DNA from: Syncephalis fuscata S228
Lineage: Eukaryota > Fungi > Zoopagomycota
Length of the DNA: 64,000 bases
Reading direction: 5' to 3'
Assembly (NCBI GenBank): GCA_025786725.1
Contig: JAHLTZ010000038.1
Location: 62,001 to 126,000, forward strand
The notes below the pieces were generated by a model that searched no databases, was not told the origin of the DNA, and worked only from the letters and a program-made list of their open reading frames with translations. Below are positions 12,505 through 42,505 of the stretch, piece by piece (position 1 is the stretch's first letter; every line of letters starts with the position of its first letter). The translations under genes and the position numbers were made by a program.

Positions 12505-13358
12505 TTGTGGTTAAAATGACTATATTTACTGATATTCAATCTACTGAACATGATAATGGGTGGTGAATGACGTCAGGGTCAAAATACTCGTCATCATAGA
12601 TTTATTATCCAATATGCATATACCCGGTACACATATATCCTTAGTCGTTATATTATTCCAATTCTATTCCATACTACTATATATCATATAATGATATACT
12701 AGACACATTCTACTGTTTATGTGTTTCAATACACTCCACTCATTCCCTCATTGCATTATATGCACTGTAACTTCAACATCGTTTTATACTTTCTTACCAT
12801 ACATTTATCATTTTATATATCATTCTATACTCGCATAGTCTTCCTCTACCCAAAACTACTTTTATTTTTGTTTTAGCTTTATTATTAATAAATTTGACTA
12901 ATGTCGGTCTCTGCTCATGCATATATGCTCATTAGCTCGAACATTGCTAATCTCGTTCAATATTGCATATTCATTATAACGTTTATCATTTTATTATATA
13001 TTGGCCATACGCTGTCTATAACCGTTGTCGGTATGGTTCCAGCTTTTTTATTAATAAAATTGACATATTGCACTTAGTTTGTTCACTGAGTTATATTAGT
13101 AGAACAAACAACATGAGTGTGAACGAAGTTATGTTTTATTAAGATTATTTATAAATAAACTAGATCATGCTAACTAGTTATGGTTTAATGTTAATCAAGC
13201 AAAGTGATGGGTATATATAGCAATAACGCATACTGTGGTGATATATGCATACTATATAATTAATCTACTATGATGAGTATTTGATAATCAATGTCACTCA
13301 CCATCCAGCATCATGTTCAATAGGCTGGTTGTTATTAAAAATAGTCATTTGACCACCA
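12505..13358. mobile_element. Non-autonomous inverted-repeat element (MITE/Mutator-like), copy 1
   Basis: About 115 bp imperfect terminal inverted arms (tggtggtcaaatgacta...ctattgaacatg...aatactcatc...tatgcatata) around a ~620 bp non-coding core. The core recurs nearly identically, in inverted orientation, at 22.7-23.35 kb and 35.0-35.64 kb. Confidence 0.85.
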
Positions 13359-14685
13359 GATCATGTTAAATGTTAATAAATAAGACAGTAATAAATAAAT
13401 CATTGGCACTATTATTAAAATAGTTGGTGTAGATGCAGTATTGAATGTAGCTACTTGTAATCTAGCCATTCAAATATCAATGACTTTAATTAAATATATG
13501 TACTAGTATTTTAGTTTTAATAAACAGAATAAGCACAACATTAGACAAACTAGTAATGGATTCACAGTGTTATGTCGATTCGGCAAACACCTCATACGCT
13601 TTTTATTAAATCTACCATTTCAATGTAATATATGTATAGTACCCACCACCTCCCTCTTTATTACCACCACTTCAATCAAACCAAAGCATTTAGCAGATGC
13701 GCAATAGCAATGCCAGTTAGTGTTGGGTAATATAAACCAGATATGTCCCATTTAGAATCCAGCCCAAACAATAGTACCAACGACAGTATACAGTATTGTT
13801 GTCGATGCTTGTGCCAACGAATTCTATAGTTGGTATTGTAAGTTGCATGCAAAATATTTGTGCCCGATAACAAATGCAGTTCAGATATACTTGTTGATCC
13901 GGCACCAATGGTTGAATAGCTATAATAAAAGTGCGTTAGTATTGTTTAGTAGTAATAAGCACCTACATCTAGTTGATTGTTCCTTGCGTATAGTTTATAG
14001 TGTACATGAGTGTAGTTGTTTGTGTATTGTTGTTATTTGTTATACAAATAAACTAGAAATGTTGTTAAAAGTTGTTAAACAAGATAGCAACTAGTACAGA
14101 AACTATGCGTCCACCTGGAGTACTGACAATACTACGACTTAATCGTAAATAACATTTGTCAGAAGCACATAGCTTTTACTAGCCACCATCAAGATGGCGA
14201 TGCTGCTTAATAAATGTCATAATGTTACGTGGCTATAAGCAGCATAAACTACTGGTTCACCCAATTGTAGCTGATGTATAAAGCCAGACGCATATAAATA
14301 CTACATCATATTATGACTAAACAACATGTTGTCATATACTGATGCACTATGAAAAGATTACAGTATAACAACTAGTCTACGCTACGATGTAATCAACCGT
14401 AGAGATGTAATTATTTCGGTCGCTAGTCCAGTCAGTAGCATCGTCATAATTTTTCCAAACGGTAGTTAAAATTAATACATGTCGACTAGTGCCATACTGC
14501 AGTCGTTTAACAGCACCACAAGTAAACAGTATGATACATGTTCACCTATATAGCATCGCATATCTCATCAATCTAGTGTGTGATGACAGTGTTCAGCAAG
14601 TTGAACAATACCAACACACCTCCAGCGCGCGTTACAAACAGTGAGCACTAACATATGGCCACCCATCACAGGTCGCCGCATCCAT

Positions 14686-14857
14686 ATGAGGGAAACACAG
14701 CAATAACTGACTTGCTAATACTGTTGCTGCGCGCTCTAGCCTTTACAGGAGGGAGCATAGAGCAGTATTAAGCTAATACTGTGCGCCTAGCGTCCCCATG
14801 AGAGAGCGTGCAGCAATACCGACTTATGTCCTATCACTGCACGCTCCAGCATCCCAC
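14686..14857. repeat. Three tandem 51-61 bp hairpin units
   Basis: Units start with atgaggg/aggaggg/atgagag and end with ctagc or ccagc. Stems: cagcaata/tgttgctg, cagtatta/taatactg (perfect), gagcgtgcag/ctgcacgctc (perfect). Confidence 0.7.
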
Positions 14858-16064
14858 ATATCTCCGCACTACACTAGTATACAGCCGCCTATTACGGGCA
14901 GCCATATAATTGTTGAGCCAGTATAATACAGCAGTCTGCAAATACTGTATTGCACATTCAACACAGCTCACAAGTAAGAACACAGTATATCGTGATCAAC
15001 CAACAAGGGGACCCACACCACTGGATGTAACTACTAGATTTAATGCTAACCATTAACAAACGGTTTACAGCACTTAACAACTAGAAACAGGAGAAGGCGA
15101 GATAATGAGCAAAAGTAAGCTCAACACAACCTTATAAACTTACTTAAAACATATCTACCAATTAGAATGGACAATATTGGTAAATAGTGTGGTAGCTGCT
15201 CATTGGCGTATTGCACTGACTGAACCTTCTAATGTCAGATACCATCTTATCAGTATATTGGATTATAATCCCTTCCTTATTTCCATATTTGCTCACTTTT
15301 TGCCTTCCATTTGCCGGTCATTTCCGCGCATAATCAGCATATCTACACTGGCTAGTTGAATCAATTGGCCAATGCAACTGAAACATAGCCAAATGCAACC
15401 ATTCTTAATCAGTTGTACCACTATAATAGCGGCTCTTTCCGATGCTATCAATATTTTCAGGGTCTAGCGGGTATTTTTGCTTTCCCCAACATTCTTGCCA
15501 TTCCGCACACAATTAAATCAGTCGATCCACACAATTTATTACTGTATTAGTTAAATAAAAATGACTACTTTTCTTTAGAAATATGGTCTATAACATAATT
15601 CACCGATTGAGTTTCAATGCACTAAATAGAAATAAAATACACGTTGTTCATATTACATTACAAAGTCCGTTAAAGCTATGAAGTAAAAACAGGAATAAAC
15701 ACGTAACCATATCGACTGCAAAGGCCAACATGAAAACCAGTATAATGTGGCACATGCATGCTTGGCCAAGTGACTATATAAATACCGATATGCACAATAG
15801 TTTGCCATACAACTTAGGACTGAGCTATAGCATCAGTAAGCAGAACATACTACAAGTATAATGCTATTAATTGTAAAATAAAGTATACTATCGTTATATT
15901 ACCTTCAATACTGCTGATATTGTGTTATTGTGTGTCTTTAAATTTATAATGACGCAATAAACATAACTGTTTTGCTTTGCTTTCTGCTACCACTTTACTT
16001 TGAGTTTTACTTTCACTTTGGAATATCATCCGTTTTGACATTCATATTGAACACTTTTATCACT

Positions 16065-18532
16065 ATGACTTTTCCAAACTCAAAGCAAACATTTGCCTCT
16101 ACATCTACTCCTACGCTGGGCACAATTCTTCATGTCCCAACCACTGCTGTTGTTGAACAGCCTCTCAATCTTTTAAGTAATGAAGATTTGATTTATTACA
16201 ACGTTCCAGACTTTTGGAACACTTTATCTAACGAGCATCGTGCTGCCATAGTTGCATGGATAGAAATTTGTGAAGCTGAATCCAAAGGTATGTTAAACAA
16301 TACTGAATAACTATTTAGCTAATTGATATTGTTTAGAGTGTATTTTACTAAAAATAGACGCTATATCGTTGGAGCAGACGAAAGCTGGTAATGTATAAAG
16401 ACTATATGAAACAGTAAACTAACTGTATGCACGTGTTATACAGCAACTACTCTTTAGCCGCAAAGTTTATGCCGAAGCACTGCTTCAAACTCTTAGTAGT
16501 AAGTACAATATATACTTTACTAAACCGATATTAAGTATGAGCCATCATAGGAGGATGAAACTGTTACGTGCACGGTAAGAAAATAGTCATTTAACATTTT
16601 TAATGCTAATAAATTACTTAGAATATTGGATTACCACTTTTAACGGGTTAGTTTGAATAGTTATCAACAGTTAAACTGCTAACATTTATTTAGTTAATGA
16701 AACTGAGTTGCTTGTCGGCGAGGCAACAGTAGTAACCGATGATTGCGTTATCCATATACCTGGCAATGAAAGTAAGCAACAACTAATTATTATTATTATT
16801 TCTAATCATAATTGGTAGTAATGTTTAATATTTATTTTATTAAACGTTATACCCCTATCCAAGTAGAAGACAGCTTGGAGTATGAGCAGGTAAGTTTATA
16901 AATACATTTCATATTATTGCTGTACTAACTTTATTGACACTATAGAAGATCAACACGCGATTTATGCTCATTGACAAGATCCTTGGCGAGTAAGTAACTA
17001 AACTTAACAAATTAATTAACTAACCAACTATTTATAATAGGGGATCTTTCGGCAAGGTCCACCTGGGATTTGACCGCAGCACAGGGCGGCGTGCTGCAGT
17101 CAAAGTATCACCAGCAGAGGACAACATTAGCAGCTTCATCCATGAAGTCTGCGTACTAAGCGAGGTGTGTGGCCACCCTCGCATAGTAGGATTTATCGAT
17201 GGCGAGATCACCGCCGCAAACACGTACTTAATTCTCGAGTACGCGTCGGGTGGTGATCTAATCGATTACATTTGTCTTCATGAGACACTTCCAGAGATGG
17301 AAGCAAAAAATATCTTCAAACAGCTGCTTGAAGGCATTCAAGTAAGTAATACTATAAAACTTTAATTAAAATACTAACATTTTATTAGCACCTTCACAGC
17401 AAAGATATCATCCATTGCGGTAAGTAGCTGATCTATTAATCAATATAATCACTAATCACTATTATTGTTGCTATTACTATTTAGATATCAAAGTAGGTCA
17501 TTTATCTAATATTTATAACCATTGCTAACATTTAAACAGCCTGACAACATATTGCTGTTAGATGGTCAGAGTGCTCCCAAAGTCGTTTTTTCAGACTTTG
17601 GAATGGCGCGCGTTCTTCCCCCTTCATCCGCTGTGACCACCGTCTATGGCACAGTGTCCTATATGGCACCTGAAGTGCTATTAGGATCTGAAGGGCGGGA
17701 GAAAATGCTTTCCATCGTCGAAACGATTTGCTGGCCCGCGAATCGTTTCCCTTCAACATTGCTGAATGCTGAAGGGTATGGAAAGCCTGCTGATATGTGG
17801 AGCCTGGGGGTAACGCTTCACGTAATGCTATTTGGTAAGTACAAACAAGAATAAAAATAATATACTAACTATTCTATACTATTGATTAGGCGATTGGCCC
17901 TATGCCTTTACGGACAGCAAATCTGTGTATTTAAAAAGCATGCTACAGAATTTGCCGACATTTGGCCGAGGAAGAAAAGATAGACCAAGCGAAAAAGGTA
18001 AGCTGAATACTTTTTTATTAACAATAGCTAATATATTGCAGCCATTGAGTTGATGGAAGGATTGCTTGATCTCGATGTTAAGACGCGGTTTACTGCTGAA
18101 AACGCGTTGAAATGTACCTGGTTTAACGATGAGCCAGTAGTTGCAACTACACCTGTAGCAGTAATGGCAACATCAACAACAACAACACCATCGTCATCAT
18201 CATCAACAACAACACCATCGTCATCATCATCAACAACAACACCATCGTCATCATCATCAACAACAACACCATCGTCATCATCATCAACAACAACACCATC
18301 GTCATCATCATCAACAACAACACCATCGTCATCATCATCAACAACAACACCATCGTCATCATCATCAGTGACAACAACAGCAGTACCAACAGTAGCGGCA
18401 CTGGTGCATAAGCCTTTACGACGACGACGACGCAAGTTAAAGCGTCAGTGCTACTCAAAATACAAGACGCAAGGTGTAACCAAACGGATACTTCCTTTCC
18501 GCAAGTGTCGTCTTCACAAAAAGGCATATTAA
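16065..18532 (+). CDS. FHA-like domain Ser/Thr protein kinase (CAMK group, Chk2/Dun1/Mek1-like architecture), paralog 1
   Basis: LGEGSFGKV, AAVK, HPRIV, LILEYASGGDL, HCDIKPDNILL (split over an 8-nt exon), DFG, GTVSYMAPE, DMWSLGV, RFTAENAL. N-terminal small exons resemble FHA (RYIVG...C, VNET). Basic C-terminal NLS-like RRRRRKLKR. Confidence 0.88.
18179..18367 (+). repeat. 27-bp coding minisatellite, 7 copies, encoding TTTPSSSSS
   Basis: Seven perfect copies of ACAACAACACCATCGTCATCATCATCA in the kinase C-terminal tail. Confidence 0.95.
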
Positions 18533-18729
18533 TTAAAAGGTAAAAGCTCAACAACAATCATACAAATCGCAATACTAACTATCTATATACTCAGCTGTTC
18601 CATTTCATTCGTTCATTATTTGCCTATATGTTATCAATAAATATCGCAATTACTCTTTATTTAGTATATAAACCATCGTTCTATCTTCTATAATGCGGCG
18701 ATAATTGGTATGTTTATTTTAATGATTTT

Positions 18730-20790
18730 TGGTGTCAAATGACTATTATTTTAATACATTCGCTATTATACTGAATCTATGTTCTATAATAAGAATAGTT
18801 CTAGGGGTAAATGACTTTATTCTCAATGCATTTATTCTTTACTATTAGTCTGTTCTATGATGTATCGACACATTGGGTAGATTGACTTATTATTTACACT
18901 CCATTTATTAATGAATTAAACTCGGCTGTTTATAAATATTGACTGACAGGCTCACATCTCACAATCTACGTCACCACATTTCCCTTTCTCTTTCTTTACA
19001 CTTGACAGCATATATCCATTACATATACTTGTACACTCATATATGCTAACTAGATAGTGTTAGTAGTTGACTGACTACTAGTTATGTACAAACACTATTT
19101 ACATTACTTCTTGCAGCACTGTTTTGTAATCTGACCTTTTTGCTAATCACTTTCATCGCTTTGATAATTAATGCTGGCACCTTTATTAGCATAGTAAGCA
19201 CATTTCTGGCTTGTTTTATGCTATGTTAAGCATATGCTATGTTTTGCTATAGATTGCCACTACAGGTCATCTGGCAACAGCTTTACTATTTCAACAGTGG
19301 CAGTGTGATCTACTACTGTCGAGCCAGCACAAGCCGCTGCCAGTACAATCTGTGGCGGCATTCTCTAGCAAAAACAGTGTATACAGTGATTCTGGCAGCA
19401 TATAGCCAGCACAGTCTTCAGGTACAGCTGCCTTATGCATACACCACCAATATTAGTATATCGAACCGCTAGTATAGTTGCTAAGTAAGTCTTCAGCGCC
19501 AGTGCAACAATGCAAGTTGCTACTGTTGCTATTACTGTATGTGCATAGCTGTCAATACGATGACTGTGGTGACTATATGCGCTGTTACTTCTCTACCAAG
19601 TTCCTTCTCTGTTTGATTCCACTGCCTGAACATTCTCGCTCAACACTGCTTCTTTCTAAACATCGGCGTTTTCAAATGCAACAACTAATGCGTCTAACAC
19701 GTTAACTTGTAGACTGTAGTATATTTAACAAATGTTGCTATTTGATCATTGTCGCTAACGGCTACAGGCTCTGTAATCTATGAACAGACATTGGTGTATA
19801 TGCTGTCGTTTGATTGCAGCGTCTTCCATAGCATCTGCTTAGTATGTAGTCAGCGGTGCTTGTACAGTGCTTTATTTACATTCTAATTATTGCACTAATT
19901 GTCCTGAGCCGGTACTGTAACTGGTGTCAATGTTTATGACGGTTGCGTTTGACAGTCTCTGACTATGTCTATCAGTCTACATCTGAAGCATTTACCGTTT
20001 CTTTGAAGCTACAGGTAAGCATTGTTATGTTTTATTAAATATGTTTATTGTGCGGACAAAGACGGTGTAGCACAAATAGCCATGTACGCTTTTATAATCG
20101 GCTGTTTACTATGGTAAGACAACTGGCGCTGCTATAATAAATATTTGCTTATTTTTACTTCAAACTACTTACCATTTAATCAACTGTTATTTTACATAGA
20201 TATTTAGGTATGCAGTGTTAGTGTTGCTGTTTGCATTCATGCACTGTGTTTTTTTCAAAAATACTAGCTTTTAAAAAGATCAAAGCTTCTTTCCTTACCG
20301 TTTATAATATGGAATATATAGATTCAAATGAATGGTCAAATAAAGTGTAAAATAATGCAATAAAGGTATAGTATGCGTATTGCACAAGCAATCAAGTAAA
20401 ATATACAAACAATACGGCGAGTAACAAATAAACGAGTTTTATCAATAAGACATGATGAGTATAGTTTAGAATAGAATGAATGGATAAAATAATAGTGAAG
20501 ATATACATAGACGATTAAGTACGATGATTGAAACTATAGCAATAAAGCTAGCGCAATAAAACACCTGTGTAAATAGGTTGTGCTCATTATATGATCAATC
20601 AATATACAATATAATAAATACAGCATAGGAATGATATGGGTGGATAGAAGGCATATGCATACTAAATACTAAATCTATAATGACGAGTATTTTAATGGCT
20701 AATGCCACTCATTGCCCAGTTCCATTTTCATTAGTATAAATATATAGTTAAACTGTTAGAGTGCTATTGCGTGTAGTCATGTAAACTCAA
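18730..20790. mobile_element. Older ~2 kb member of the same inverted-repeat family with a different internal sequence
   Basis: Left: ggtgtcaaatgacta (18731) plus two degenerate tandem tips at 18804 and 18875. Right: reversed arm 20650-20790 (tatgcatact...aatctataatgacgagtattt...tagtcatgtaaactcaa). The sub-terminal region matches 30060-30290 in reverse. Confidence 0.6.
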
Positions 20791-21257: not shown

Positions 21258-22427
21258 CTATAAAGTATCTGGTGGTAGTGTACAGGCTGGTGGATGGCCA
21301 TTAATCACTGTAATGTCGCCTCGGATCGACTTTTTTACGATAGTTGGTGTAGGTGGTGGAGGGAACTGTATTATAGTAGTAACAATGGTAAACAGTAATT
21401 ATATATGTATCGTTAGTATGTTTATTTAAATACATTGTTATTACTTACGGTGCGTCCCGGTTGATTAAAGTGAATTGCTGCCCAAGTTGGATGTTCACGT
21501 TCCAATTGCATAATCTTATCTTCTAATACTTTAAGCCGTTCGTAAATATCAATTGGTACAGATGTAGCTAATATTCAATATATGTAATATCATTCATTAG
21601 TATTATAACAATATACTCATTAATTAACTAGTTACCATATTGAACATTTAAATGCTGTTCGATATTACGGAGTCGTTCATCTACACCAGTATTGCCAACA
21701 ATAGGTTTTGACCACGGAGATGATGTTGTCGAAGTGCTGCTCGCTTTGTTCAACAAAGATGAACCAGCGACAAGTCGCGATAGTGGCTCTCCTCCATTAT
21801 CGACAACATCCAGTTTCATTTGTATAGTGCGGTTTAATTCTGTTGGATTAGTGCGTGCACTATACTCTGTATTATCTATGAATTTACAATTGCAGCTATT
21901 ATTAATATTATAATTCGTTGATAGATAAAGGTATTTGCGTAATTACACACCTTTATCTATGCTAATGGATAAGCTGCAAACTCGGTACAATTACTTTTGT
22001 CAATGTCGGCTCTTTTACGTTGCATCAATCCAAGAATGCGCTTCTCCACCTGATTAATCAATGGTATTAATACTTGGAATAATAAAATATATTATGTAAC
22101 TTACCTGTGATTTAGATTGACGAATTTGTACTTGATCTGCATCTTGTTCGGCATACTTTTTTAATACTACTGTTTCTACAATTACGCTATTAGTTTATAT
22201 TGCTATGTGGTTGCAATAATAGCGGTGTTAGATAACCGACTATCCAGCTACTTTACCGGTTAACTGTTCGTCATTCTCTGTAGACACAGAAAGTGTACGC
22301 TTTCGTACAGACGATGGTTTACCGCTTGGCCGTACTTGTCTGGCTTGTTTCTCGCTCTTTCCCCCTTGTTGCGCCTTCTCTTCCTCTTCTTCCTTTGTAA
22401 TCAGTATGGATTCTTCGTTATCGACAT
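21258..22427 (-). CDS. MBIP-like protein (MAP3K12-binding inhibitory protein family)
   Basis: VEKRILGLMQRKRADIDKSNCTEF(C), SART, GVDERLRNIEQHL and VPIDIYERLKVLEDKIMQLE match the MBIP family pattern. Two -1 shifts (about 22423 and 21978) must be corrected; the exon 1/2 junction is uncertain. Confidence 0.78.
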
Positions 22428-22620
22428 TGTATGATGTGTTTAAAAAAGAATGGTTTGGGAATGTTAAAAATGTGTGTAAAAACTACTATGCCAATTTATA
22501 CCGATATTTATGTAAGCTGTTTTACATTGAACTCCATACTTTTTCAGAAATAAGATATAGAACTCAAATTTCACTTCAATCGAATTTAATGTAAGCAATT
22601 CATTAATAGTTTAATGCAAT

Positions 22621-23591: not shown

Positions 23592-23710
23592 GATTATGAT
23601 TAAATTATTGATAAAAAACAGTTATATATTAGTATTAAATTAAGCATAGCATATTATGTGATTAATATATTTTATTTAACTTAATCAATAAATAACAAGG
23701 TCCATAAGCT

Positions 23711-27543: not shown

Positions 27544-27889
27544 TATTTATAATAAAAATATGATGCTTGAGAGAAAAATAACTTAATCGATATTATTTGT
27601 ATTCTATTGTTTATTTAGGTCAATAAATTATCTTAAATAGACTGTATTATTTTACTATTACACCAATAATATAATCAGTTACATCATTTACTTGATTTGC
27701 ATTATTATATTTGTATATTATTTTTTATTAATTTAAATATAATTTTTGTTTTGCAATTACTAATATAATACAGTTAGCTACGCCCAAGCTAGGTCTAAAT
27801 GAACAACGGTTTATACAATGTATAATCAATATATAATAAAATAACGTATATTAGAACGATATACATTGGTAAATCATAAATAACTATGA

Positions 27890-29960: not shown

Positions 29961-30300
29961 TGATTTAGTGATCAAATGCTATATTGATTATTCACGCATT
30001 TAAACTAAACATCCGCTCTATTGAACATGATGATGATAGTGGGTGACATCAATCATCAACTATTCATCGCCATATATCTTCTATCCATCCATATCATTTT
30101 ATTATATTAGATGCACTCTATTTGTTGTATACTTGACACACTTTATTCGCTTCACTCGTTGATCTATATACATTATAGATTTATTATCACTATTTGTATC
30201 TTTTTTAATGTATACTGTTTTATTGCATATCAATCATGCGCTATTCATAACTGTTGTTTGTTTGCCGCCAACTTTATTTGTTACAGAACTCAGTTTATTT
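29961..30300 (+). repeat. Solo arm of the inverted-repeat family (subfamily shared with 20.4-20.8 kb)
   Basis: tgatttagtgatcaaatgcta...ctctattgaacatgatgatg...gtgacatcaatcatcaa; cttctatccatccatatcatt is the reverse complement of about 20630-20650. Confidence 0.7.
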
Positions 30301-32684
30301 TGTTCATGACGCATAAGTGTATACACAATAACTACATTACTGCTCATGTTCTTCTCACTGCCCATTACTGCTAATGTATCATAATGACATATAATGGTTT
30401 ATTACCATAATATAGATAACAAACAACAACATGATGTTTGTGCATTACAGGTAGTGTATACCGTATATCGTAGAATAGCCATAAAGTGTTTTATAGTTAA
30501 TTAAACACTAAAAACAATTGTAGACACAATGTAATAAAACAGTCGACATCATTGTCTTATCACTATTCTAATTACATCATATAAACTTGGCAAATATAAA
30601 GTATTTTAACGGCACTTGGATGAATTGTATTAGTATACATGTATATTCCATTAAGGTTTGTTATAACTACCAATTGAAACTTGATTCCAATTAGTTGGTT
30701 TGTATACTGTAGAATAACCAGTGCTGATTTAAAATAAAACTGTAATTGGCATTACTAAACGAATAGAGCTGCCTAGTATGTTATGTATGTCATTTTAACC
30801 TATAACATATTCACGCTTAATCGGTTGAATCCTGTAACACGAATGCTATTCGTCAGTTTATCACATTGTAAAGATACTGCTAATAATGATGTTATTCAAT
30901 ATGAGCAATAGCAATAATGATTATTTGTATCACGGATGTAAAGAATGGTGTTTAAATAAAAGCATGGCTGTTGAATATTACACAAGTAGTTATTTATACG
31001 GAAGAATAACTGCATAGTACATTGGTCTTAGACGGTTTCAGGTGAGTCATGTTTTATTGCAAAAATTCGTAATCGTCACAATATAAGCCGGCCTTGCTGC
31101 TTTTGAACCAAGCATTATGTTTTTATCTCCTCTTGCTATTCTTTGTCGCTCGATATGACCTACGCCCCTTTCTCTTACCGCTGTTTGTTGCTCGATATGC
31201 TTATCATTTTTTAAATGTCCGATAATTACAAGACCGCAGCAACTTACTGTTTTATATGCTTAAGTTTAGTAAATGAGCGTGTGAGGAGCAATGCGGTTGT
31301 GTTCTTTGGCTATGTGAGCACCATTAGATATATAGTAAACTAGACACTATATGATTTGGCAGCATGCATTCCAACATGCTGTATACGGTGTTAGACTGCA
31401 CATAGCCAATAGGCCTTCTGTTCAGTGATATGGCGTTTGCTGTGTGTTTGTTTGTGGTAATTGCATTGCTAAGTATTTGGTGTATGGGCAGTAAAGATCT
31501 TTAGATATCGCCTATAACTAAATTGACTTGGATGTGGTGGTAGGATTAGTTGCTGTTTATATAACAGTCACTAGCTTGACCCTGTACGAACGTACATAGT
31601 GTTGCATATGGATAACGTATGCGATAGAGCCAGTGCGGTTGTGCGGGATGAGAGTAGTGGTTTGTGCGGCTGGTTGAATAGTCTACCGCCGTAGTCCGGG
31701 CTGAGCTTCTGCTTGTGACGGTACAGTGATATTACGGTTTGGTGCTATGACCAACAGTTATTTCGGATGCTTAGCAATGTGATTATGCGGCAAGCATAAT
31801 TGCTATAGTTTATTTACATGATCGTTTGCTAATGTCACTTTTAATAGATATAGATTCCAGGCATGGTTATATTCAGCAAGCATAGAATTGCAATACATCG
31901 TTTAGTCACTATTCTGCACCATTATCATTATACATGTGTATTTTTATGAATAAATAAAGTTATTTTGCAAAAAGTGGGCAAATATGCAAAATGGCTAGTA
32001 CCTGAAAATAAACTCGGGCATGGTAGCACAATGGAAAAAAGATTATACGTTAAAGTTTGCAAATGCACCTTAAAATAATTGAACAACATGCAAGGGCTGT
32101 GCAGCTCATGTAACAGTTTGATAATTAAATGCAACGAATGACAAAGAAATAAATAAGCATGCAGGAAATAAAGTGGTGTAATACTACTGATTAGCATATA
32201 ATTTACGCAATGTTGCGCGTATCGCTTGCTATGTTAACCAGATACTCAATATCAATTTAGTGAGTCATCCATCCGGAACAGCAATTGTGTAAAGAAAGTA
32301 AGACCAGTTTCACCTATACAAAATCGTCATTATGGCAGCAGCATGTTATGTGTATTGCTGTCGCGGCGACTTTAACGCCATTAATATTACAGCGCCGATT
32401 AATTGATTAGTTCACAACAATCGGACCTTTAATAAATAAAATAAAGTATGTTTAGTCTTGCTGGCAACTTAACGCGTTTGTATGCAGTTTTAGTGTATAT
32501 TATTCATAAATAGATCAATAGCAATACTCGCTGTATTCCGATAGACATCTGTAACTGTGTAACTAGTGCATTGTGAAAAGAGCAAACTAGCCAGCAGTCG
32601 TATGTGACCTTCCTTTTTATTCGCGGCTGCTGCGTATTTTCATTGTTGCATAGCAGATTCATATTGAAGCTATTGCCATTGAAT

Positions 32685-34630
32685 ATGCCATCGAATACAA
32701 ATAGCTACCGTTTTTTTGAACACCATGACGTCGTGCTCTACATGCGGCGTTTTATGGATGATAAAGAGGTAGTCCTCCTTGCAAGTACTTGTCGTCTTCT
32801 GTATCAGACGATGGCCAATCGTCCCGACTATTGGAAGCGACAGTACAGACGAACGTTTTCATTAGGCGATCCAAGGGAACAAGAGTGGATCAAATGGTAC
32901 AATTGGAATATGAATGCCATACCAAACTCTACTCCTTCATCGTCTACCTCTAGTCTTGAGCCTGCGTCATGGTTTCAAGCCTACCAGCGACGCCAACAGG
33001 TTGATCGCAACCTAATGGCAGGCCAATTCGAAAGAAGAAACTGCCAACTACCGGTCGATAAATGTGATCAACTGAAATTGGTTGATTTAAATCCTTGGCA
33101 TGTGCTAGTACAAGACAAAGAAGCATCGAAAATATGGTCTATTCAGCATGGCTGTTTTGGCGAAGATGATGAACACAGCAACGAAGAACTGGCCTGCAAT
33201 GAGCTGACCATTCCTTTGTCGCCATTTATATCTACCGGCCAATTCCGAATCATGAATCCCCATGGAACACAGCGGTTTGTTGTGGCCAATGTTTTCATAG
33301 ACACATATGAAGATTTAGCTTCTATTTACGCGTGCAATCCAATAAGTAAGTATTAATAATAATTTAATTAGAATACTAAATATTTATTAATGTTATTACA
33401 ATAGTGAGTATTGATGAAATAGAAGCACCACACATAAAAAAAACTGAACTAAAATATTCAACTGTTTTGAATGAACGCTTTCCTATTGCTTCGTCGACTG
33501 AATCTTCGGAAAAACGAGAAAGCTGGACGCGGAGGGCCGTTTTAGTATGGTCTGTTACTGACTGCTCATTCCCGAAAGTTATTCAACTTCAACACGAACA
33601 TGAATATCAGCAACAAGGAGAAAAACTAGGCTTTGTCGACATTTATAACGAATGGATCCTGTTTCGCACCATCAATATAGAAGAAAATTATCATCGATTC
33701 GATTTATTCGACCTAAATGGCAGTCGATGGGTACGAGGTCCAGCAGTGGACAATAACATTTCACGCGCCTGCATTCAGTTTGCTTCTCTCGACCAATGCC
33801 AGTTTTTAACATGCTCAATAATGCCCGATCTTGTAGAAGATGACACTGCTTCTACGGTCGCTGAAATTCAATATTCCGAAACTATTGACAGTGACCATGA
33901 AAGAGCGTACATTCGATGGAAGCTTTTTAATACTCAGAAAGGCCAATTGCAGCGCAAAGCAATATCATTGGGTCAAATCGCCATTCGTCATTATCCAGAC
34001 GCCACGATCAAGGTTGAAATGTATACAAATAAGGCATGTTTAATCATTGTAAGTAGTCACCATCCAAAATATGCCACTTTACTATTATTGCTCGTATTCG
34101 GAAAGTCTGTATCGGACGATGTGCCAGAGTCAATATTCGAGTCTAGTAATTACTGCCAATCACTGCCAATTGATAACTCTGAACAAGGCCGTTTGGAATG
34201 GCATCGGTATATAGATACCAACAATATTACCAAACTATTCAGCAAAAAATTGATTATTGTCGATGCTGGTAGAAATTATAATGTATTGGATGCTTGCAAT
34301 GGAAATATGCTGCTTTTAATTTTTTATCCATTCCACGAAAGACTTGCGCCTTTCCTTGGGCCTTTATGTGCCATGGTCGGCAACAAGATAGAGAAAATTT
34401 GGTTTACTGATATGAAAACCCGCCAGTATTACGAAGCACCGCCATGCCTTACTGGCAGACGAGTTCGTGACGCCAGTGCTACAACTCGAGGTCTTGTTAG
34501 AGTAGAAACTAGCAACTTTCCAGGTTTTGAAATAGAGCCTGAATGGTCGAACTATCATATATCAAGTGCCGTCTTTGGTCGAATTGCCAAGGAAGAAGGC
34601 AATGTTGTCTACAAAGCTTATATGTTATAA
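32685..34630 (+). CDS. F-box-like protein with a divergent C-terminal region (2 exons)
   Basis: N-terminal HDVVLYMRRFMDDKEVVLLASTCRLLYQ..YWKRQY and post-F-box WFQAYQRRQQVDRNLMAG pattern. A single intron at 33346-33404 joins the two ORFs in frame. Confidence 0.72.
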
Positions 34631-34776
34631 AGAGCTTTAATTGCAAACTCTTATTGTAAATAAAATTTGTATTACATCTATTGAATATCCAAATTGAATA
34701 GTCCATTAAGTATGCAAAAGTAATACCATAATAATAATGATATTTTTATTAGCAGTTTATTGGACACTTAGTGTAA

Positions 34777-35754
34777 TTGGGGCAAATGAATAAACTTGAT
34801 AACACTCGCGTAATTGAACTACACATTTAATCTATTGAACATGGAGACAAGTGGCAAGTTTTATTTAATCGTCACATCATCACATTTATTGTTTGCTTGG
34901 TGGTTAAATGACTAACATTTAATAACATTCAACCTATTGAACATGGTGGTGGATGGTGAGTGACATCAGTTATCAAATACTCGTCATAGTAGATTTATTA
35001 TCCAGTATGCATATATCACCACAGTATGCGTTATTGCTATATATACCCATCACTTTGCTTGATTGACATTAAACCATAACTAGTTAGCATGATCTAGTTT
35101 ATTTATAAATAATCTTAATAAAACATAACTTCGTTCACACTCATGTTGTTTGTTCTACTAATATAACTCAGTGAACAAACTAAGTGCAATATGTCAATTT
35201 TATTAATAAAAAGTTGGAACCATACCGACAACGGTTATAGACAGCGTATGGCCAATATATAATAAAATGATAAACGTTATAATGAATATGCAATATTGAA
35301 CGAGATTAGCAATGTTCAAGCTAATGAGCATATATGCATGAGCAGAGGACCGACATTAGACGAATTTATTAATAACAAAGCTAAAACAAAAATAAAAGTA
35401 GTTTTGGGTAGAGGAAGACTATGCGAGTATAGAATGATATATAAAATGATAAATGTATGGAAAGAAAGTATAAAACGATGTTGAAGTTACAGTGCATATA
35501 ATGCAATGAGTGGAATGAGTGGAGTGTATTAGAACACATAAACAGTAGAATGTGTCTAGTATATCATTATATGATATATAGTAGTATGGAATAGAATTGG
35601 AATAATATAACGACTAAGGATATATGTGTACCGGGTATATGCATATTGGATAATAAATCTATGATGATGAGTATTTTGGACCCTGATGTGAATTACTCCT
35701 AGTTTCATGTTCAATAGATTGGTTGTTATTAAATGTTAGTCACTTGACCACCAA
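34777..35754. mobile_element. Inverted-repeat element copy 3 (same core orientation as copy 2) with the extra outer module on the left
   Basis: Extra module 34777-34896, arms 34897-35015 and 35637-35754, core near-identical to copies 1 and 2. Confidence 0.88.
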
Positions 35755-36449
35755 AAAAACAATAAGTTTTAATAAAATGTCATAAAAATATTATATTATA
35801 TTAATAAAAATACGGGCCATGGCAAAAAGAAAAGCTGTTTAAATTCCAGTTTACATATACATCTTTAGCATAAGTAAATAAAGTCGAAATAATATCGAGT
35901 AGAGTGCATAATTTACGTTGACTCAAGTTTCCAGCAGTGATCATATTAGATTGCTGAACAATTATTAATATGTTGATTTTTACGGCCTATGCATGTTAGT
36001 ACAGTATGCATAAGCACAATTTTAGCAGACATTCATCAATGTATGTTGTTCCGTATTAGCAAGTGTTCAGTAAAAAACAATGATATTTACCTTTATAATG
36101 GTCACTACGTCGTTTTGTTGCTAAATTTAAATAAATACCTATAGCATTCAACGTCCACATACAATCATAGCAAAACAACTGCACCAGGAACGGCTTACTT
36201 GATGTATGTTGATGACCTAGACTCCCACCCATCAGTGCTGGTCTATATGGTCTTCAGCTATCATAATCACGATGCGCTGTGGCTGCTGTTTTGTCGTTGC
36301 TTATAACACAAGCAATATCAGAAAACTACTCAACCAAACGACATACATGATTAGATAAACAGAAACGAACAACCAATAGCACTGACCACTTACCCACGTC
36401 TAGGCCATCTACATACAAACAAGAAATCTAGAATACAACAATGACAGCG

Positions 36450-37619
36450 CAATAGCACACTGTTACAACACAAAACAGCCAACACAGCTGCACCACCATT
36501 CTAGACAGTTAAAGACAACAGCTTAGATAGTAAAAACATTATAACACTTTAAACCAAAGCTGTGCCAATAAATGTACTTTAACCGTTAAAAACAATGATG
36601 CCACTATGATGGCTGTCTAGCATTGCCCGCAAACAAGGAGTGCTGATATACATAATGCTCACCTGAGCGTATACATACAAACACCACCATACAATACACA
36701 GTGGTCTACAACATAGATCAAAATGCTTTAGCATCGTGCTGTCGATCTTCGCACTGTGGTTGATTCGACCATTTTACTTGCTTTAAACAAGTTAAATATG
36801 CCAAGCAGCTGTATATTGTATGGCTTCACAAGCAAGCAGTTTACAGTGCGCCATATAAATATTTGAATAATACTTAACATTACAGTCTACGAATGTATAA
36901 AATAACGGAATATGGTTAATAGCTAAAGAATAAATGTAAAATCAAAAAAAATAAGATTACAAATATTAACAGAGTATACGCATTTATCAATATACATTAT
37001 TTAGTATTAGTAACTAATCAATATCATGCATTAGTATTTACCTTTACAATGACCATTATGTTGTTTTGCTGATGAATTTAAATAAACATCTAATAACATG
37101 CAACAGTCCAAATACAAACATGATGAAGCGGCAACGGCAAACAGACAACTTAAAATACAATAGCACACTGTTACAACACAAAACAGCCAACACAGCTGCA
37201 CCACCATTCTAGACAGTTAAAGACAACAGCTTAGATAGTAAAAACATTATAACACTTTAAACCAAAGCTGTGCCAATAAATGTACTTTAACCGTTAAAAA
37301 CAATGATGCCACTATGATGGCTGTCTAGCATTGCCCGCAAACAAGGAGTGCTGATATACATAATGCTCACCTGAGCGTATACATACAAACACCACCATAC
37401 AATACACAGTGGTCTACAGCATAGATCAAAATGCTTTAGCATCGTGCTGTCGATCAGTTCACTGGGACTGGTTTGACTATTCCATTTGCTTTATACAAGT
37501 TAAATATGCCAAGCAGTTGTATAGTGTATGGCTTCACAAGCAAGCAGTTTACAGTGCGCCATATAAATATTTGAATAATACTTAGCATTACAGTCTACGA
37601 ATGTATAAAATAACGGAAT
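36450..37619. repeat. 462-bp direct repeat pair (36450-36911 and 37158-37619; period 708 bp)
   Basis: The first ~300 bp are essentially identical, with a cluster of mismatches near 36748-36775. More diverged similarity also lies upstream (36083-36170 versus 37035-37125). Confidence 0.92.
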
Positions 37620-39084
37620 GTGTTTAGTAATTAGTTAAAGAATAGTGTAGAAATAGAAGGCGTAGTTGAGGTTGTGGATTCAGTGAGTAATGCAAGTGCT
37701 TTATATAGGCCATTGTATGTATTAGTGTGAAAGCAGGCATGTAATACCATCCAATGAATTGAATCCATCGGCCACAATGAGACAGACAAAAAAGCGGAAT
37801 AAACCGGCTTAAAGAAGGGAATGCTGTGTGATATCGTGTAGCGTACATGGCTAACTCACTAAGAAAGCACGTCATTATAAGACAGAGTGCCACTTTATCC
37901 AATTGAACCGTGCGATGGTTCGGCGAAACAAAAAATGTTCGAATGCGGATGTAGAGCTTACTGGAAAATTGCTCAGTGTGTGTGGACAGGCAATGCCGAT
38001 ACGAGTTGCCTATCATGGTAGTACAATCGCGGAACTAACTGAATCAGGGTAGCTGCTTTTGAATCGGGGTAACACCTTTTTTTAATGAGCGTGCATATAC
38101 TAGTGCCAGCAAATATACAAGCTAACTAGAAAGATTAGCACACTGTGTGTATTGTGTATTAAAATTTAAAAACAATTATGCTATTTATAACATCATCAGT
38201 TGATGAATATGCATGATCAACTTAAAATTAATTAATACCTGACATATTAACCGGTATTTAGTAACCTTAAATAAAACCAAACACTTTGTTTTTCATAAAC
38301 CAAATTTCTGGGGTTTTTTCAAAGTTGCGTTCCTGAGTGCGTGTAACCGTCCATTTACGGACAGTTTCATCCAGATGACGACTTTCTTTGTCAAAAAGCC
38401 GAACTGTTTAAATCGGAGTTTAAATTGCACTAATGTTGCAACATTGTCCATATTCATGACCGCTTTATCGTACACCACCAATAGTATATGTTTATATAAC
38501 TTCATATAAGCATTCTGCCACATTGTGGCTACAAAATGAGCCTAATAAACACTATTTAATATTCAAATGGGCTGTTGTCTCGTATTGCTTATATCTGCAA
38601 CATTTCATAAAATTGTTTGGTATTCAAACTCTAATGCAAATAATTCATCATTGGTGCGCAGATGATAGTTAGAATGTTGAGACCGGAAGTGGGTAAATTG
38701 CGCTAGTGTATGTGCGCGCACTGTTCGTATCCTAATTGGTCGATGGCGTTATCGCGAACAAAACCGCAAGTCCAGCTATCAGTAGCTTGGTGGTGTATGT
38801 TTCATATACTAGCCAATTAAAATTTTAAAATACATTAGTGCTTTTAATCAGAGTTACGCGAATATTGCTCTCGCAAATATGCCATGAGTCACAGGCAGCG
38901 TTTGCCAGCGTAGCGATATTATCAAAAATAAAGCGTGTGCGTCAGTTGAAATCATATAATACTGTATACGCATTTTCATCTTTGCAAAGACATTGTACTT
39001 GCTTTATCATAGTGTACTTACATTCTGCCTTTATCTTGCAGTATTTGAACAATCTTTGAATATCTAAAATCACACATAAACACT

Positions 39085-41811
39085 ATGGATAGCTTAGCAA
39101 ATCCATTTCTTTCTACAGCCGCTACTTCAGATGCGGCTAGTTCTTTTTCATCCTCATCCTCGCCAGCATCATCATTTTTTTTATCCGAGTTAAACGTAGT
39201 TGAACCAACTACACATTCTACTGCTGAAGATGATTCCAATAAGTTATCTTCGGCAGTTCAAGTGACAAACACGGCTCGTATACCTGCTCTTGCTTTGCCG
39301 TTTGCCACATCAAACGATGCTGTAGAAGGCATACATGAGAAGCTTCCTGCGGCATGGTCGCAATTGAGCGAAGCAGAGCGTTTAGAGGTAGTGGGCTGGG
39401 TAGAAACATTTGACAAAGATAGAACAGGTAAGTGGATATATTGCCAATGAATAATTTAAAATAATCATTTATTCAAAGAGTATTTGTTAAAAAAAGACGA
39501 GATATGCATCCTTGGGCAAAACACGGCAAAGTAAGTTGTACGATGTGTGGTAGTAGTGTTTATTGTTATAATACTGTGGCACATTGCTGCATAAGAGATG
39601 TGGAGACACTAAATAATTGATTATTTAGTCTACACATGATATCAATGAATCATATTGTATAAATTTATTAATATAATTTTTGTGCTATTTAGCAAATGTG
39701 ACAAACAAAAGGAATATCAAAACGGGTGGTTTTCGGTATTTATAGTAAGTATCACGCAAATTTGTGCTAAAATGGCAGTAATAACAATGATAATGTATAT
39801 TTAGATTAATGATCTTCTAATGATCTCAGTAAGTATTCATCATAATAGTTAATAATAATGCTAATTGTGTAATTAGAATTTCATGACCAAGGATATACTG
39901 GTTAAATAGCAATTATTAAAATTATTAAAATGCTAATTATATATTCAGTAAATGGTGTTGCTGTTTCACCCAACATCACATGCACCATTGAGAATAAAAG
40001 TTTTATAAATCCTGTTGGATTTAACGGTAAGTTTCATCAACATATAGTAATCAAACTAATCAGCAATAGCAGTATGCTACATTGCATACAAAGTTGAAAG
40101 TTTAACGCTAAGAACCGACGATCAAAGCCATGATTTCGACGTCGTAAGTCATTAATATTACAGTAACGCTAATTATAACAACTAACACAATTATAGGTCA
40201 TTAACAGTCGATATGCCGTCACAACTCAGCAGCTTGGCGCGTAAGTATTTATTATTTAAATTATATTGTTTCTAACTCCAATTTAGTGGCGGCTTTGGCG
40301 AGGTTTATTACGGCGAGACGCGCTGTAATAAAATGCCTATTGCTGCCAAAATATCTAAAAAGCAGAAGGCCAAAGGCGCAGCAAATAATGGTCATTTCAA
40401 TATCTTTGATGAAGAAAAAGATATGATCATTGCAGCACAAGAACATTCAAGTATTATCAAACTAGTTGGTGCACACAACACAGAATTGCACAGCTATTTG
40501 ATACTTGAATATTTAAATGGTGGCAACTTGTTCAATTATTGCACGTGCCATGGCCCATTACCCGAACAAGAGGCCAAATACATATTTCAACAAATATTAA
40601 ATGGTGTTAAAGTAAGCAATAATTTTAATTAATAATCGTTACTAACGTCGAACTAGCATCTTCACGATAGAAACATTGTACATTTGGGTAAGTTAAAAAC
40701 AGTGTTTATTTACATAATTAACAAATTTATTATTGCTATTGCTACTATTGCTACTATTTAGATATTAAGGTAATTAACTAAATAAGGCTTAAATTTATTA
40801 TCTTTGATTCTAACCATATGCTAGCTGGAGAATATCTTACTCCGACAACATGCCAAATATCCGTCTATCGTTATTACAGATTTTGGTTTGGCGCGCAAAC
40901 TTGTCTCAAAAAATCCAACGATTAATGGCATATGTGGTACTATTGGATATATGGCACCGGACGCTATTCTTCGGTCCAAGAATAGCAACAATAATGAAAT
41001 TATACTGCAAAATAAGCGCAGTTTAAAGAATATACTATGTGGATCACAATTTACTGAGCAAGGATACGGCAAGGATGCAGACCAATGGAGCCTTGGTGTT
41101 ACATTACATGCTCTTCTGTCAAGTAAGTATTTGTAAATTGATAAGCTTGTTAATTTATTGTTTTAATTTAGATACGATGCCATATACATATGATACCAAA
41201 AACAAGTATGGAAGCTACATTATCAATGTCTTAAATAGCCCATTGGTATTTGGTGATCTTTGGAAGAGTGTATCCAAAGAAGGTAAGTATATTTTAAAAC
41301 AATGCTACAAATGAGCTAATTTTAATTTTTATAGCACGCAATTTAGTTCGCGGTCTTCTAGCCATTGATCGCAATTCACGCTTGACAGTGGAACAGGCCT
41401 TAGAGAGTGCTTGGTTTACAGAACCTTTAAAAGAATCCAGCAATCCAAAATCAATTCAAGAGACATTGGATAAAAAAGAAGAAGAAAAAGTAAAGAACGT
41501 TGAGAATGTAGATGCAAATGAAAATACAGAAGCTGAACAACAAGAAGAAGTGGCAGTAGAAAAGGAAGAGCCCGTTGAAAAGGAAGAAGAAATAGCAATA
41601 AACAGTGTCGAAGAATCAGGCAAAAATTCAATTGCATCAAACGTGGAAAGTGCAGCTCAAGACCATCTTGCTGTTCCTGTAAATCAACATGGTATTAAAC
41701 GTGCGCGTTCGTCAGATGCAAGTAGCGATCAACCTCTGTTAAAAAATAACAAAAATTGTAAGTACTTAACAGAATTATTTGCTTCGTGTACTTACTGAAC
41801 AATTGTTAGAA
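39085..41811 (+). CDS. FHA-like domain Ser/Thr protein kinase, paralog 2
   Basis: LGAGGFGEV, IAAK, LILEYLNGGNL, HLDIKLENILL (8-nt exon), DFG, GTIGYMAPD, DQWSLGV, RLTVEQAL. Intron positions largely match paralog 1. Acidic tail; stop codon T|AA split by a final intron (alternative end 41798). Confidence 0.88.
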
Positions 41812-42105
41812 ATCACTCTGCAAACTATTTGTTCTATTTGTTAGTTTTATTAATAAATATCAAATTTTAGTACAGCACAATAGTTTTATATATAAATAAT
41901 ACAGTAATGATATGTGCTATACCAATATTCACTGACGCATACTATTATGTTAAATAAAGGTCGCTATTACAATATAAATACTGTTTATTGTAAAGAATTA
42001 TGTTATTATATATTGTTACTCGAGCTTAAAAACTAAACATAATATCAGTGGCTTATTTAGATGATTGTTTTATTATTATTATAACATTTTATTAACTATT
42101 TAATA

Positions 42106-42505
42106 TGATTTGGGGTCAAATGACTAAATTTAATAACATTCGCGCAATTGAACTGCACATCAATCTATTGAACATGGGGACAAGTGGTGAGTTTGATTTA
42201 ATCATCACATTATTACATTATTGTGATTTGGTGGTCAAATGACTAACATTTAATAACATTCAACCTATTGAACATGAAACTAGGAGTAATTCACATCAGG
42301 GTCCAAAATACTCATCATCATAGATTTATTATCCAATATGCATATACCCGGTACACATATATCCTTAGTCATTATATTATTCCAATTCTATTCCATACTA
42401 CTATATATCATATAATGATATACTAGACGCATTCTATTGTTTATGTGTTCCAACACACTTTACTCAGTCCACTCATTACGTTATATGCACTATAACATGA
42501 ACATT
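42106..42505 (+). mobile_element. Inverted-repeat element copy 4, partial: extra module, arm and ~160 bp of core
   Basis: tggggtcaaatgacta (42111) and ttggtggtcaaatgacta (42228). The arm variant aaactaggagtaattcacatcagggtcc is identical to the right arm of copy 3. The core diverges after about 42500. Confidence 0.82.

Follow-up and report, generated by a model that had tools for sequence, protein, structure and literature searches.

The repeat arms that punctuate both accessory islands of this Syncephalis fuscata S228 DNA are the inverted ends, often tandemly doubled, of an abundant non-coding repeat of foldback/MITE-like type. We give a probability of roughly 60% to the reading that this family settles past the 3' ends of genes and that recombination at its arms reshuffles the arms and bounds duplications of gene blocks. 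The window (the whole stretch of 64,000 nucleotides that was analysed) contains the following features.

12230–12500: outer module beside element A, of lower copy number, common to about 10 loci.
12505–13358, − strand: element A, full (~855 bp), reversed relative to C and 94% identical to it over 860 nt; arms at 12505–12625 (+) and 13239–13358 (−), arm-model E 4e-26 and 3e-30.
13241–15281, no strand assigned: Y, a multi-copy unit upstream of kinase 1, starting exactly at the tail of the right arm of A.
17174–18532, + strand: kinase 1, exons of the kinase domain and a last ORF with its stop at 18532; Pkinase E 9e-16.
18728–20786, + strand: element W, a ~2.06-kb mosaic member with outward tips; one or more degenerate arms from 18728 (+), E 0.0045, and an arm at 20653–20786 (−), E 2e-14.
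22598–23600, + strand: element B, which takes up the space between two convergent genes; arms at 22620–22739 (+), 23352–23472 (−) and 23475–23591 (−).
27803–27999, + strand: degenerate remnant of a core, upstream of the C2H2 pseudogene, 73–83% identical to the core of C.
28372–29678, + strand: zinc-finger-family pseudogene with a C2H2 finger and an AAG-like fold, many stops, 42% identical to intact copies.
29966–30087, + strand: solo arm (E 8e-12), ~150 bp past the pseudogene end, with unit Z directly after.
30100–31971: Z, a multi-copy unit, 96–98% identical at 6 loci.
32604–34630, + strand: 'F-box' gene (a name without Pfam confirmation), two large ORFs, stop 34630.
34779–35755, + strand: element C, core ~620 bp, with strong self-foldback; arms at 34779–34898 (+), 34897–35018 (+) and 35633–35755 (−).
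35736–37900, − strand: X, a multi-copy spliced transcript, apparently non-coding, head-to-head with kinase 2.
38101–41811, + strand: kinase 2 region, kinase domain 40444–41465.
42109–42504, + strand: element D, truncated; arms at 42109–42216 (+) and 42227–42349 (+), followed by reversed core (155 bp).

The nhmmer arm model found 13 arms in the window (8 on the + and 5 on the − strand), all within 12505–42349, and no arm at E<=0.01 in the rest of the window. The six arms listed in an earlier note on this DNA were every one recovered where it had placed them (18728–18818, 29966–30087, 34779–34898 and 42109–42216 on +, 13358–13239 and 35755–35633 on −), the one at 18728–18818 being a weak match (E 0.0045), and seven more were added (12505+, 20786−, 22620+, 23472−, 23591−, 34897+ and 42227+). 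Its observation that arms are nearly absent from the flanking conserved blocks also holds, as none lies beyond that range and the DNA to the right of 42504 is single-copy (42505–46000). This position is the right edge of the repeat-built island, where the match to some 35 of 40 family members breaks off (42503–42507). Of the stops it gave, 18532 and 34630 are indeed ORF ends, whereas the last ORF of kinase 2 stops at 41798 rather than 41811; the names kinase, ERO1 and C2CD5 were confirmed, whereas MBIP, like 'F-box', was not confirmed by Pfam.

The arms are 119–132 nt long and pair as inverted ends, each complete element enclosing a conserved core, with the tips outward and its two ends 80–88% complementary. 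Complete elements measure 855–1000 bp, W being larger, and A, B and C are mutually 94% identical over 855–870 nt. Element C is predicted to form a stable hairpin (single-strand DNA fold of −120.6 kcal/mol vs −70.6 for shuffles, z −11.7). According to the arm model, + and − arms stand at both element ends in 24 loci, with patterns that differ by locus (+,+,−; +,−,−; +,+,−,−) and many ends carrying two or three tandem arms. The open frames in the elements are short and AT-rich only (109–113 aa; 52 aa), and a search of Rfam with the element gave no family match. The 11-nt tip GGTCAAATGAC, allowing at most one mismatch, occurs 7 times in the window vs 1.0 expected (at least 7 in 0 of 100 shuffles) and is the best-conserved block of the arm among 84 anchored copies; conservation extends to ~38 bp outside the tip, so that the true terminus of the element is uncertain.

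The family is dispersed throughout the 29.4-Mb genome on many contigs, at about 1000 candidate places. A strict 24-base arm pattern matched 340 times in the genome vs 0 in the control; all 40 scored genome matches, taken from 1006 first-look candidates, were full-length and 81–95% identical, and a further family search gave 414 first-look candidates. Read depth in the DNA run is ~600 over arms vs ~6 over unique DNA. W itself has dispersed copies at 12 or more loci (85–93% identical). Flanks differ among copies and include ACOX, MFS and ORFs without known identity; this genome comparison rests on about 60 loci that were read.

The elements are intergenic, and most lie 0–300 bp after the 3' end of a gene, be it a core or a lineage-specific one. 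Distances from stop to tip are 120 bp for the core gene C2CD5 (stop 23711, tip 23591), 163 bp for ACOX, and 199, 149, 196, ~150, ~300 and 131–185 bp elsewhere, and a + strand ORF stops at 22592–22594, only 2–4 nt short of element B. In a set of 24 independent loci, the element was faced by the tail of the nearest ORF (at least 90 aa) 24 times and by its head 11 times, a count of ORFs rather than gene models that is biased by short first exons. Thus the arm that follows each accessory gene is really present, as the earlier note had reported, but it is nothing special to these genes, and its caveat that arms also abut conserved genes is borne out for core genes. Every gene-adjoining arm belongs to an inverted-repeat element with tips outward or to a truncated one, so that a gene on the left always meets a '+' arm and a gene on the right a '−' arm. 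The constant arm orientation beside genes, once taken as a sign of gene capture, is therefore uninformative, because it follows from the geometry of the elements.

With regard to mobility, no target-site duplication stood out among 17 independent copies at offsets 0–160 and lengths 2–10, though these copies are old (81–86% identity) and decay is possible. No transposase or recombinase was seen among the ORFs scanned, in agreement with the earlier statement that the window has none, and a genome search gave no hAT. Arm-bounded copies encoding a transposase had been suggested as something to look for; arm pairs 2–8 kb apart gave no autonomous partner and hold host genes. The fold of the C2H2 'pseudogene' family is DNA-glycosylase-like and not that of a transposase. 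MULE genes are present, and the one MULE element read (in L060) has unrelated 206-bp ends without a match to the arm model. Transposition of the family is therefore assumed here, since neither a target-site duplication nor an autonomous partner was found. The Pack-type geometry proposed earlier does not apply: each accessory gene (both kinases, the C2H2 pseudogene, 'F-box') is found between elements, tip to tip, and not inside outward ends.

Both accessory islands are patchworks of multi-copy units with elements between them, namely pairs of an RNA gene and a kinase, the 'F-box' block, the units Z, Y and W and the zinc-finger pseudogene. Sequence comparison places arms at the boundaries of gene units that duplicate. 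The block 13400–20681 is 93–95% identical to C306:702888–710056 and the kinase-1 block occurs at 7 or more loci, while pieces such as 13400–14718 and 14790–15930 are repeated at 15 or more; the 'F-box' block (31955–34770) is found at 5 loci (90–99% identical). Y matches 14 loci from query position 41/42 to 900 at 92–94%, with a sharp shared start at the arm tail. That the arms double as the tail-first end of Y, in 14 copies and with a sharp boundary, counts against a simple MITE model.

The unit X matches 30 or more loci, and kinase 2 together with X 20 or more. In the RNA-like run X1, contigs reach very high depth at 35743–37712, with introns on the minus strand at 35986–36089 and 36923–37041, and no ORF longer than 58 aa occurs at 35.8–37.6 kb. 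The 3' end of X is at or inside the tip of the right arm of C; one contig spans 35736–35913, and the X transcript contig terminates 19 nt inside this arm. By analogy with X, Y is probably an RNA gene, head-to-head with kinase 1. The two kinases are paralogous by tblastx. W is 89–90% identical behind kinase paralogs that are themselves only 74% identical. More generally, elements behind kinase paralogs are 83–90% identical vs 69–74% for the genes; this greater similarity requires either conversion or targeted insertion.

The 6.1-kb block 35772–41908, made up of X and kinase 2, recurs at C320 with 96.7% identity and in other surroundings. Its high identity stops where the flanking repeat modules start; these modules are 75–77% identical between C320 and the window, the arms beside the block are only 75–84% alike, and the outer flanks are unrelated. 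Elements are mosaic as well, since the core of A is 98–99% identical to those of B and C, its left arm is of a third type, and its right arm with the adjoining Y sequence is 92–94% identical to 14 other loci. Moreover, C190 and C199 are 97.5% identical and differ by exactly one arm unit, and a 2.4-kb segment between inverted repeats of at least 2 kb is inverted in C26 vs C99.

The cassette-like organisation proposed earlier is thus supported in part, by multi-copy blocks whose copies end at the elements, by arm junctions that correspond in position among old paralogs, and by the mosaic arms, their variable number and the inverted segment. These features are most probably due to recombination at the arms. 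Ectopic homologous recombination and gene conversion would use the many dispersed, hairpin-prone arms as substrates and could in this way reshuffle arms, alter their number, invert segments and set the limits of gene-block duplications. The place of the elements just past 3' ends may come from a preference for, or a tolerance of, insertion there, and the arm is possibly used as a transcript end.

This last point leads to a different explanation, that an arm stood behind the ancestral gene of each family, was kept as a transcript end (terminator or polyadenylation region) and was copied passively with the gene. It agrees with arm junctions that are positionally homologous in old paralogs (only 66–69% identical), and with the solo arm that stands at an equal relative position in three C2H2 paralogs (35–42% identical in protein). 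Some stop codons lie 0–30 bp from the element, an RNA contig ends inside the tip, and the arm within the Y unit is 92–94% identical, like the rest of Y. However, arm and gene are uncoupled elsewhere: the arm is 83.5% identical where the gene end is 95–97%, and 80% where the gene is 66%, and overall arm identity is 70–84% whether the adjoining gene end is ~65% or ~95% identical. Hundreds of copies are not beside these gene families, and contigs cannot reveal real 3' ends. We regard passive copying as unlikely.

Somewhat less likely again is site-specific recombination, in which a recombinase with its gene elsewhere would cross over at the tip RGTCA-AA-TGACY. Blocks between tips that point inward would thereby be cut out and re-inserted, or flipped, at other arms, in the manner of integron or FLP/FRT systems. 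The recent 6.1-kb copy does cover just the DNA between two flanking elements while the adjoining arms are far less alike; an inversion lies between inverted arm modules, the one-arm-unit deletion extends from tip to tip, the tip is the best-conserved part of the arm, and no target-site duplication was found. On the other hand, no recombinase was seen in the ORFs scanned, and exchange points have no fixed position at the site. The high-identity edges are off the tip by 17–23 bp on one side and ~200 bp on the other, and the inner ends of large inverted duplications are at −70, −38, −14 and +38 relative to tips, so that the scatter is −70 to +38 with ~200 bp once. Homologous recombination among ~1000 copies accounts for the same facts. 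The extended form, a eukaryotic cassette system whose recombinase moves and flips units of an RNA gene and a kinase, or of zinc-finger genes, at this site and so drives family expansion without target-site duplication, is improbable to a further degree.

The least probable explanation is a composite or Pack-like transposon, in which two flanking elements mobilise a gene block via their outermost tips and spread kinase genes: a complete element stands on each side of the RNA-kinase block at C134, one inverted relative to the other, the window has a complete left element (C), and left contexts differ (ACOX vs the 'F-box' gene) with homology stopping ~14–38 bp outside the outer tip, but the flanking modules at C320 and D in the window are half elements without outer arms, outer homology limits vary (core positions 184, 241, 289–298 and ~463), no target-site duplication was found, and the outer flanks at C134 are inverted duplicates of each other that may be an assembly artefact.

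A repeat family that undergoes recombination at its arms, as we prefer, shares features with several known systems. Like MITEs, the elements are short (0.87–2 kb), non-coding and AT-rich with inverted ends and hundreds of dispersed copies, lie intergenically beside genes, and form subfamilies with common ends and different interiors. Unlike in MITEs, the ends have an unusual length (~120 bp) and are frequently doubled in tandem, some cores are conserved much more strongly than the ends (98–99% vs ~80%), and neither a target-site duplication nor an autonomous element with the same ends was found. FB-type foldback elements of animals and plants likewise have long inverted ends of tandem sub-repeats, whose number varies between ends and copies, a strong hairpin potential, and an association with inversions and other rearrangements; here, however, the sub-repeat is long (~120 bp) with only 1–3 per end, the 620-bp core is conserved, and no 9-bp target duplication of the kind usual for FB elements is seen. 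With Pack-MULEs and other Pack-type cargo transposons the family has in common long inverted ends near duplicated genes and gene copies expanded beside the same repeat. On the other hand, the genes are outside the elements with the tips toward the gene, whole intron-containing genes rather than fragments are copied, there is no 9–10-bp duplication, and the MULE that was read has unrelated ends.

Finally, the family may be compared with repeat-bounded segmental duplication (NAHR, for example Alu-mediated, or bacterial IS26-type translocatable units). In contrast to those cases, the repeat here is of foldback type and its fungal host genome is compact, and neither crossover points nor circular intermediates were seen. 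In common with them, block copies end in one dispersed repeat family, repeats are chimeric, and inversions occur between inverted copies. In this early-diverging fungus, a foldback family of ~1000 copies just past gene ends is visibly reshuffled and bounds the copies of expanding gene families, the pairs of an RNA gene and a kinase; its genome might also show repeats used as transcript ends. If the arms are truly sites of block copying and flipping, they would provide a tractable case of repeat-driven gene-family expansion.

The simplest account of the arms is the accumulation of a foldback/MITE-like family together with ectopic recombination. By self-comparison of the window, we found a unit of about 870 bp, which consists of an arm, a core of about 620 bp and an inverted arm. 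Its three full copies (A, B and C) are 94% identical overall and 98-99% identical in their cores, and the fold-back of C is stronger than that of shuffled sequence (z -11.7). All six arms listed in the earlier note are present, and a profile made from 70 arm copies from loci outside the window matched 13 arms at E<=0.01, all within 12505-42349, with none at this cut-off in the rest of the AT-rich window (31-44% G+C). The elements and arms are as follows.

12505-13358, reversed: element A, full copy
22621-23482: element B, full copy
34897-35765: element C, full copy
42109-42504: element D, shortened copy
18728 (weak arm) and 20786: the two ends of element W, a 2.06-kb mosaic member
34779, 42109 and 23475-23591: extra tandem arms outside the inner arms
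12505, 18728 (weak), 22620, 29966, 34779, 34897, 42109 and 42227, plus strand: arms matched by the profile
13358, 20786, 23472, 23591 and 35755, minus strand: arms matched by the profile

Each arm in the window is thus part of an element with its tips outward or of a truncated one. The tip GGTCAAATGAC occurs seven times in the window with up to one mismatch, against 1.0 expected. Among 84 tip-anchored arms, conservation climbs steeply at TTTGGTGGTCAAATGACTA and peaks there, and the spaced palindrome proposed for the tip was recovered as the half-sites RGTCA and TGACY flanking AA. The tip may not be the true terminus of the element, because weak conservation continues for about 38 bp beyond it, in sequence that looks like the last part of an incomplete arm unit.

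The family is dispersed throughout the assembly searched (29.4 Mb, 371 contigs). With C as the query, 1006 first-look candidates were obtained; the 40 that were scored lie on many contigs, and all are full-length, with identities of 81-95%. When up to two mismatches were allowed, a 24-base arm pattern gave 340 genome matches against none for the reversed control, and the summed depth in low-depth DNA runs was about 600 for arms against about 6 for unique DNA. The mosaic W is likewise dispersed, at 12 loci or more. About 60 loci were examined, many of which are near-duplicates of one another; the flanks are unrelated between copies and include ordinary genes such as those for an acyl-CoA oxidase and an MFS transporter. 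Rfam gave no match anywhere in the window, and our literature search retrieved no MITE or foldback family described for Syncephalis fuscata or its group. At the ends of C304 (the contig of the window, which spans C304:62001-126000) and on small contigs, arms are very dense, with 5-8 per 7-10 kb; this points to compartments rich in repeats that perhaps lie close to chromosome ends. Such arm-dense stretches are:

C304:1-10000 (L054)
C304:180000-187396 (L055)
C26:10001-20000 (L053)

The earlier note took the same-orientation arms behind the accessory genes as a possible sign of gene capture; the orientation turned out to be uninformative, since any inverted-repeat element shows a '+' end leftward and a '-' end rightward. 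The four accessory genes are all encoded on the plus strand, and therefore a '+' arm comes first downstream and a '-' arm lies upstream. The same geometry holds for core genes. The outer tip of B lies 120 bp behind C2CD5 (minus strand, stop 23711), and on its other side a plus-strand ORF (22235-22594) has its stop at 22592-22594, 2-4 nt from the left outer edge of B, so that the 3' UTR and end signals of this gene would have to lie inside B. At another locus, the stop of the acyl-CoA oxidase gene is 163 bp ahead of an arm. The spacing from stop to tip clusters at 120-300 bp across unrelated genes. We scored the nearest ORFs of at least 90 aa at 24 independent loci: 24 had the 3' end toward the element and 11 the 5' end, and with a minimum of 120 aa the numbers were 17 and 2. 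These counts are biased by short first exons, and ORFs are poor stand-ins for gene models. A real tendency of the elements toward gene 3' ends is likely, but the evidence is only suggestive. Moreover, the transcript contig of X (an RNA unit head-to-head with kinase 2), assembled on the minus strand from run X1, which we infer to be RNA, stops at 35736, 19 nt inside the right arm of C.

The DNA between the elements is itself present in many copies. Three multi-copy units are located in the window as follows.

13241-15281: unit Y, at least 14 copies with 92-94% identity, every copy beginning exactly at the arm tail
30100-31971: unit Z, 96-98% identical at six loci
35736-37900, minus strand: unit X, spliced, very deep in run X1, at 30 or more loci

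Over 6147 bp, the block of X and kinase 2 (35772-41908) matches C320 at 96.7% identity, and likewise C74; its identity to C134 is 65-90%. The arm/core modules that flank it on C320 are merely 75-77% identical to those of the window, and the outer flanks are unrelated. The order X then kinase is kept at no fewer than 20 loci; elements or arms adjoin X on C304, C234, C1, C134 and C320, and lie about 50-210 bp from the kinase 3' end on C304, C320, C74, C134, C130, C370, C197, C199 and C190. X consists of two tandem units with one intron each (35986-36089 and 36923-37041, minus strand), 36450-36749 being 99% identical to 37158-37457, and no ORF longer than 58 aa was found between 35.8 and 37.6 kb. 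X also occurs in tandem arrays on C7, C329 and C335.

A counterpart of the kinase-1 block with W (13400-20681) lies at C306:702888-710056, with 93-95% identity, and relatives of the block with 73-76% identity occur in five or more further places. The last ORF of kinase 1 contains a coding tandem repeat at 18114-18406 with a 9-nt step and a 27-nt super-period, whose copies are 94-98% identical. The 'F-box' block is found at five loci with 90-99% identity; this name, like MBIP and BET2, was given in the earlier note and was unconfirmed by domain scans of ORFs. Between Z and the 'F-box' block, the window lacks about 204-212 bp that are present in other copies, and more than 25 loci contain, with about 70% identity, a piece of about 500 bp from inside Z (30986-31480). 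Copies of Y on C224 and C357 recur every ~8 kb in alternating orientation. The island has a sharp edge: at 42503-42507 the match to D breaks off in nearly all family members, and the DNA beyond it (42505-46000) is single-copy.

The arms have their own history apart from the adjacent genes. Arm identity is 70-84% both beside gene ends of about 65% identity and beside those of about 95%, and the copies of W behind kinase paralogs of only 74% identity are 89-90% identical. The junction of kinase 3' UTR and arm keeps a homologous position in lineages whose gene identity is merely 66-69%, and so does the junction of gene end and arm in three C2H2 paralogs. Element A is a chimera, with a core 98-99% identical to B and C, a right arm that, with the adjoining Y, matches 14 other loci at 92-94% identity, all starting exactly at the arm tail, and a left arm with an outer module of a third type. 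Two 97.5%-identical copies differ by exactly one arm unit, a tip-to-tip deletion. A 2.4-kb segment with an intact C2H2 gene is inverted between C26 and C99 (positions 1-10000 of each, L033 and L037), the remainder being 98.7-99.1% identical, and is flanked by inverted repeats at least 2 kb long that hold arm modules; the two orientations reflect either an inversion polymorphism or alternative assemblies. Inverted duplications of 1.5-2.2 kb, 99.2-99.96% identical and composed of locus-specific flank and an arm module, occur at four loci around a central segment; they could be genuine palindromes or assembler error at inverted repeats. Three of them, which surround unique centres of 4.5-6.5 kb and include the 3' part of an acyl-CoA oxidase gene, are:

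L031, 1-2170 and 7830-9998
L032, 112-2314 and 6799-9001
L035, 231-1883 and 8347-10000

At the four loci, the inner ends of the duplications are no more than 70 bp from a tip, at varying positions. A dedicated site-specific recombination system acting at the arms would place breakpoints near them, as is seen, but the visible breakpoints have no single fixed nucleotide; this scatter makes such a system less likely. Under accumulation with ectopic recombination, the family would have built up just past gene ends, and about one thousand similar hairpin-prone arms would now be substrates for ectopic recombination and gene conversion. Recombination at the arms could have scrambled them, altered their number and inverted the intervening DNA, and may also have set the limits of segmental gene-block copies.

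Composite transposition of gene blocks is less likely, given that C320 and D carry half elements, that the outer limits vary and that target duplications are missing. No distinct target-site duplication was found in 17 independent copies at offsets of 0-160 and lengths of 2-10, and there were no presence/absence joints among the low-depth contigs of one organism. Large inverted duplications that end exactly at tips would be a mark of alternative transposition; this reading was rejected, since the ends scatter, and the duplications are possibly assembly artefacts. Arm pairs 2-8 kb apart hold host genes and no transposases in their interiors, and hAT was absent from the genome domain search. Four good MULE domain matches were found in the genome; the one MULE-type element read has ends unrelated to the arms and was discarded as their partner:

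L060, 3411-5822 (C90): MULE-type element of 2.4 kb with 206-bp inverted ends, 93% identical

A '+' arm lies 131-185 bp past the stop in all three paralogs of a C2H2 gene, which was therefore examined as a candidate transposase. An intact gene of about 520 aa is found on C26 and related contigs and another on C35:

28372-29678 of the window: 'C2H2 pseudogene', with many stops, 42% identical to the intact copies
L039:1504-3066 and L044:1291-2781: intact copies

The initial hints were arms on both sides in the three paralogs, five near-identical contigs, and inverted repeats around the Parasitella homologue. The 'five copies' proved to be one collinear locus type (98-99% identical), the repeat in Parasitella arose from a first exon present twice, and no flanking repeats were found in three other species. 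We rejected the candidate by its fold, which is AAG glycosylase-like and not RNase-H-like: in a confident predicted model (pLDDT 82), the central domain resembles the alkyladenine DNA glycosylase fold (Z 9.0, 158 residues) and a Pur_DNA_glyco cluster (TM 0.63). Pfam found no domain other than zinc fingers and left the last 400 residues uncovered, and a Protein Atlas search gave no usable match. The family is large (1380 clusters in a profile search), with named homologues from Mucorales. From the model, it appears as an uncharacterised family of about 520-570 aa with N-terminal C2H2 finger(s), a Pur_DNA_glyco-fold centre and a C-terminal helical bundle.

The cassette-like or Pack-transposon-like organisation suggested previously thus survives in part. 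The DNA between the arms is indeed multi-copy, whereas Pack-type geometry, a transposase and a target-site duplication were not found. In Pack-type capture the gene lies within the element's ends; here the genes lie between elements, tip to tip.
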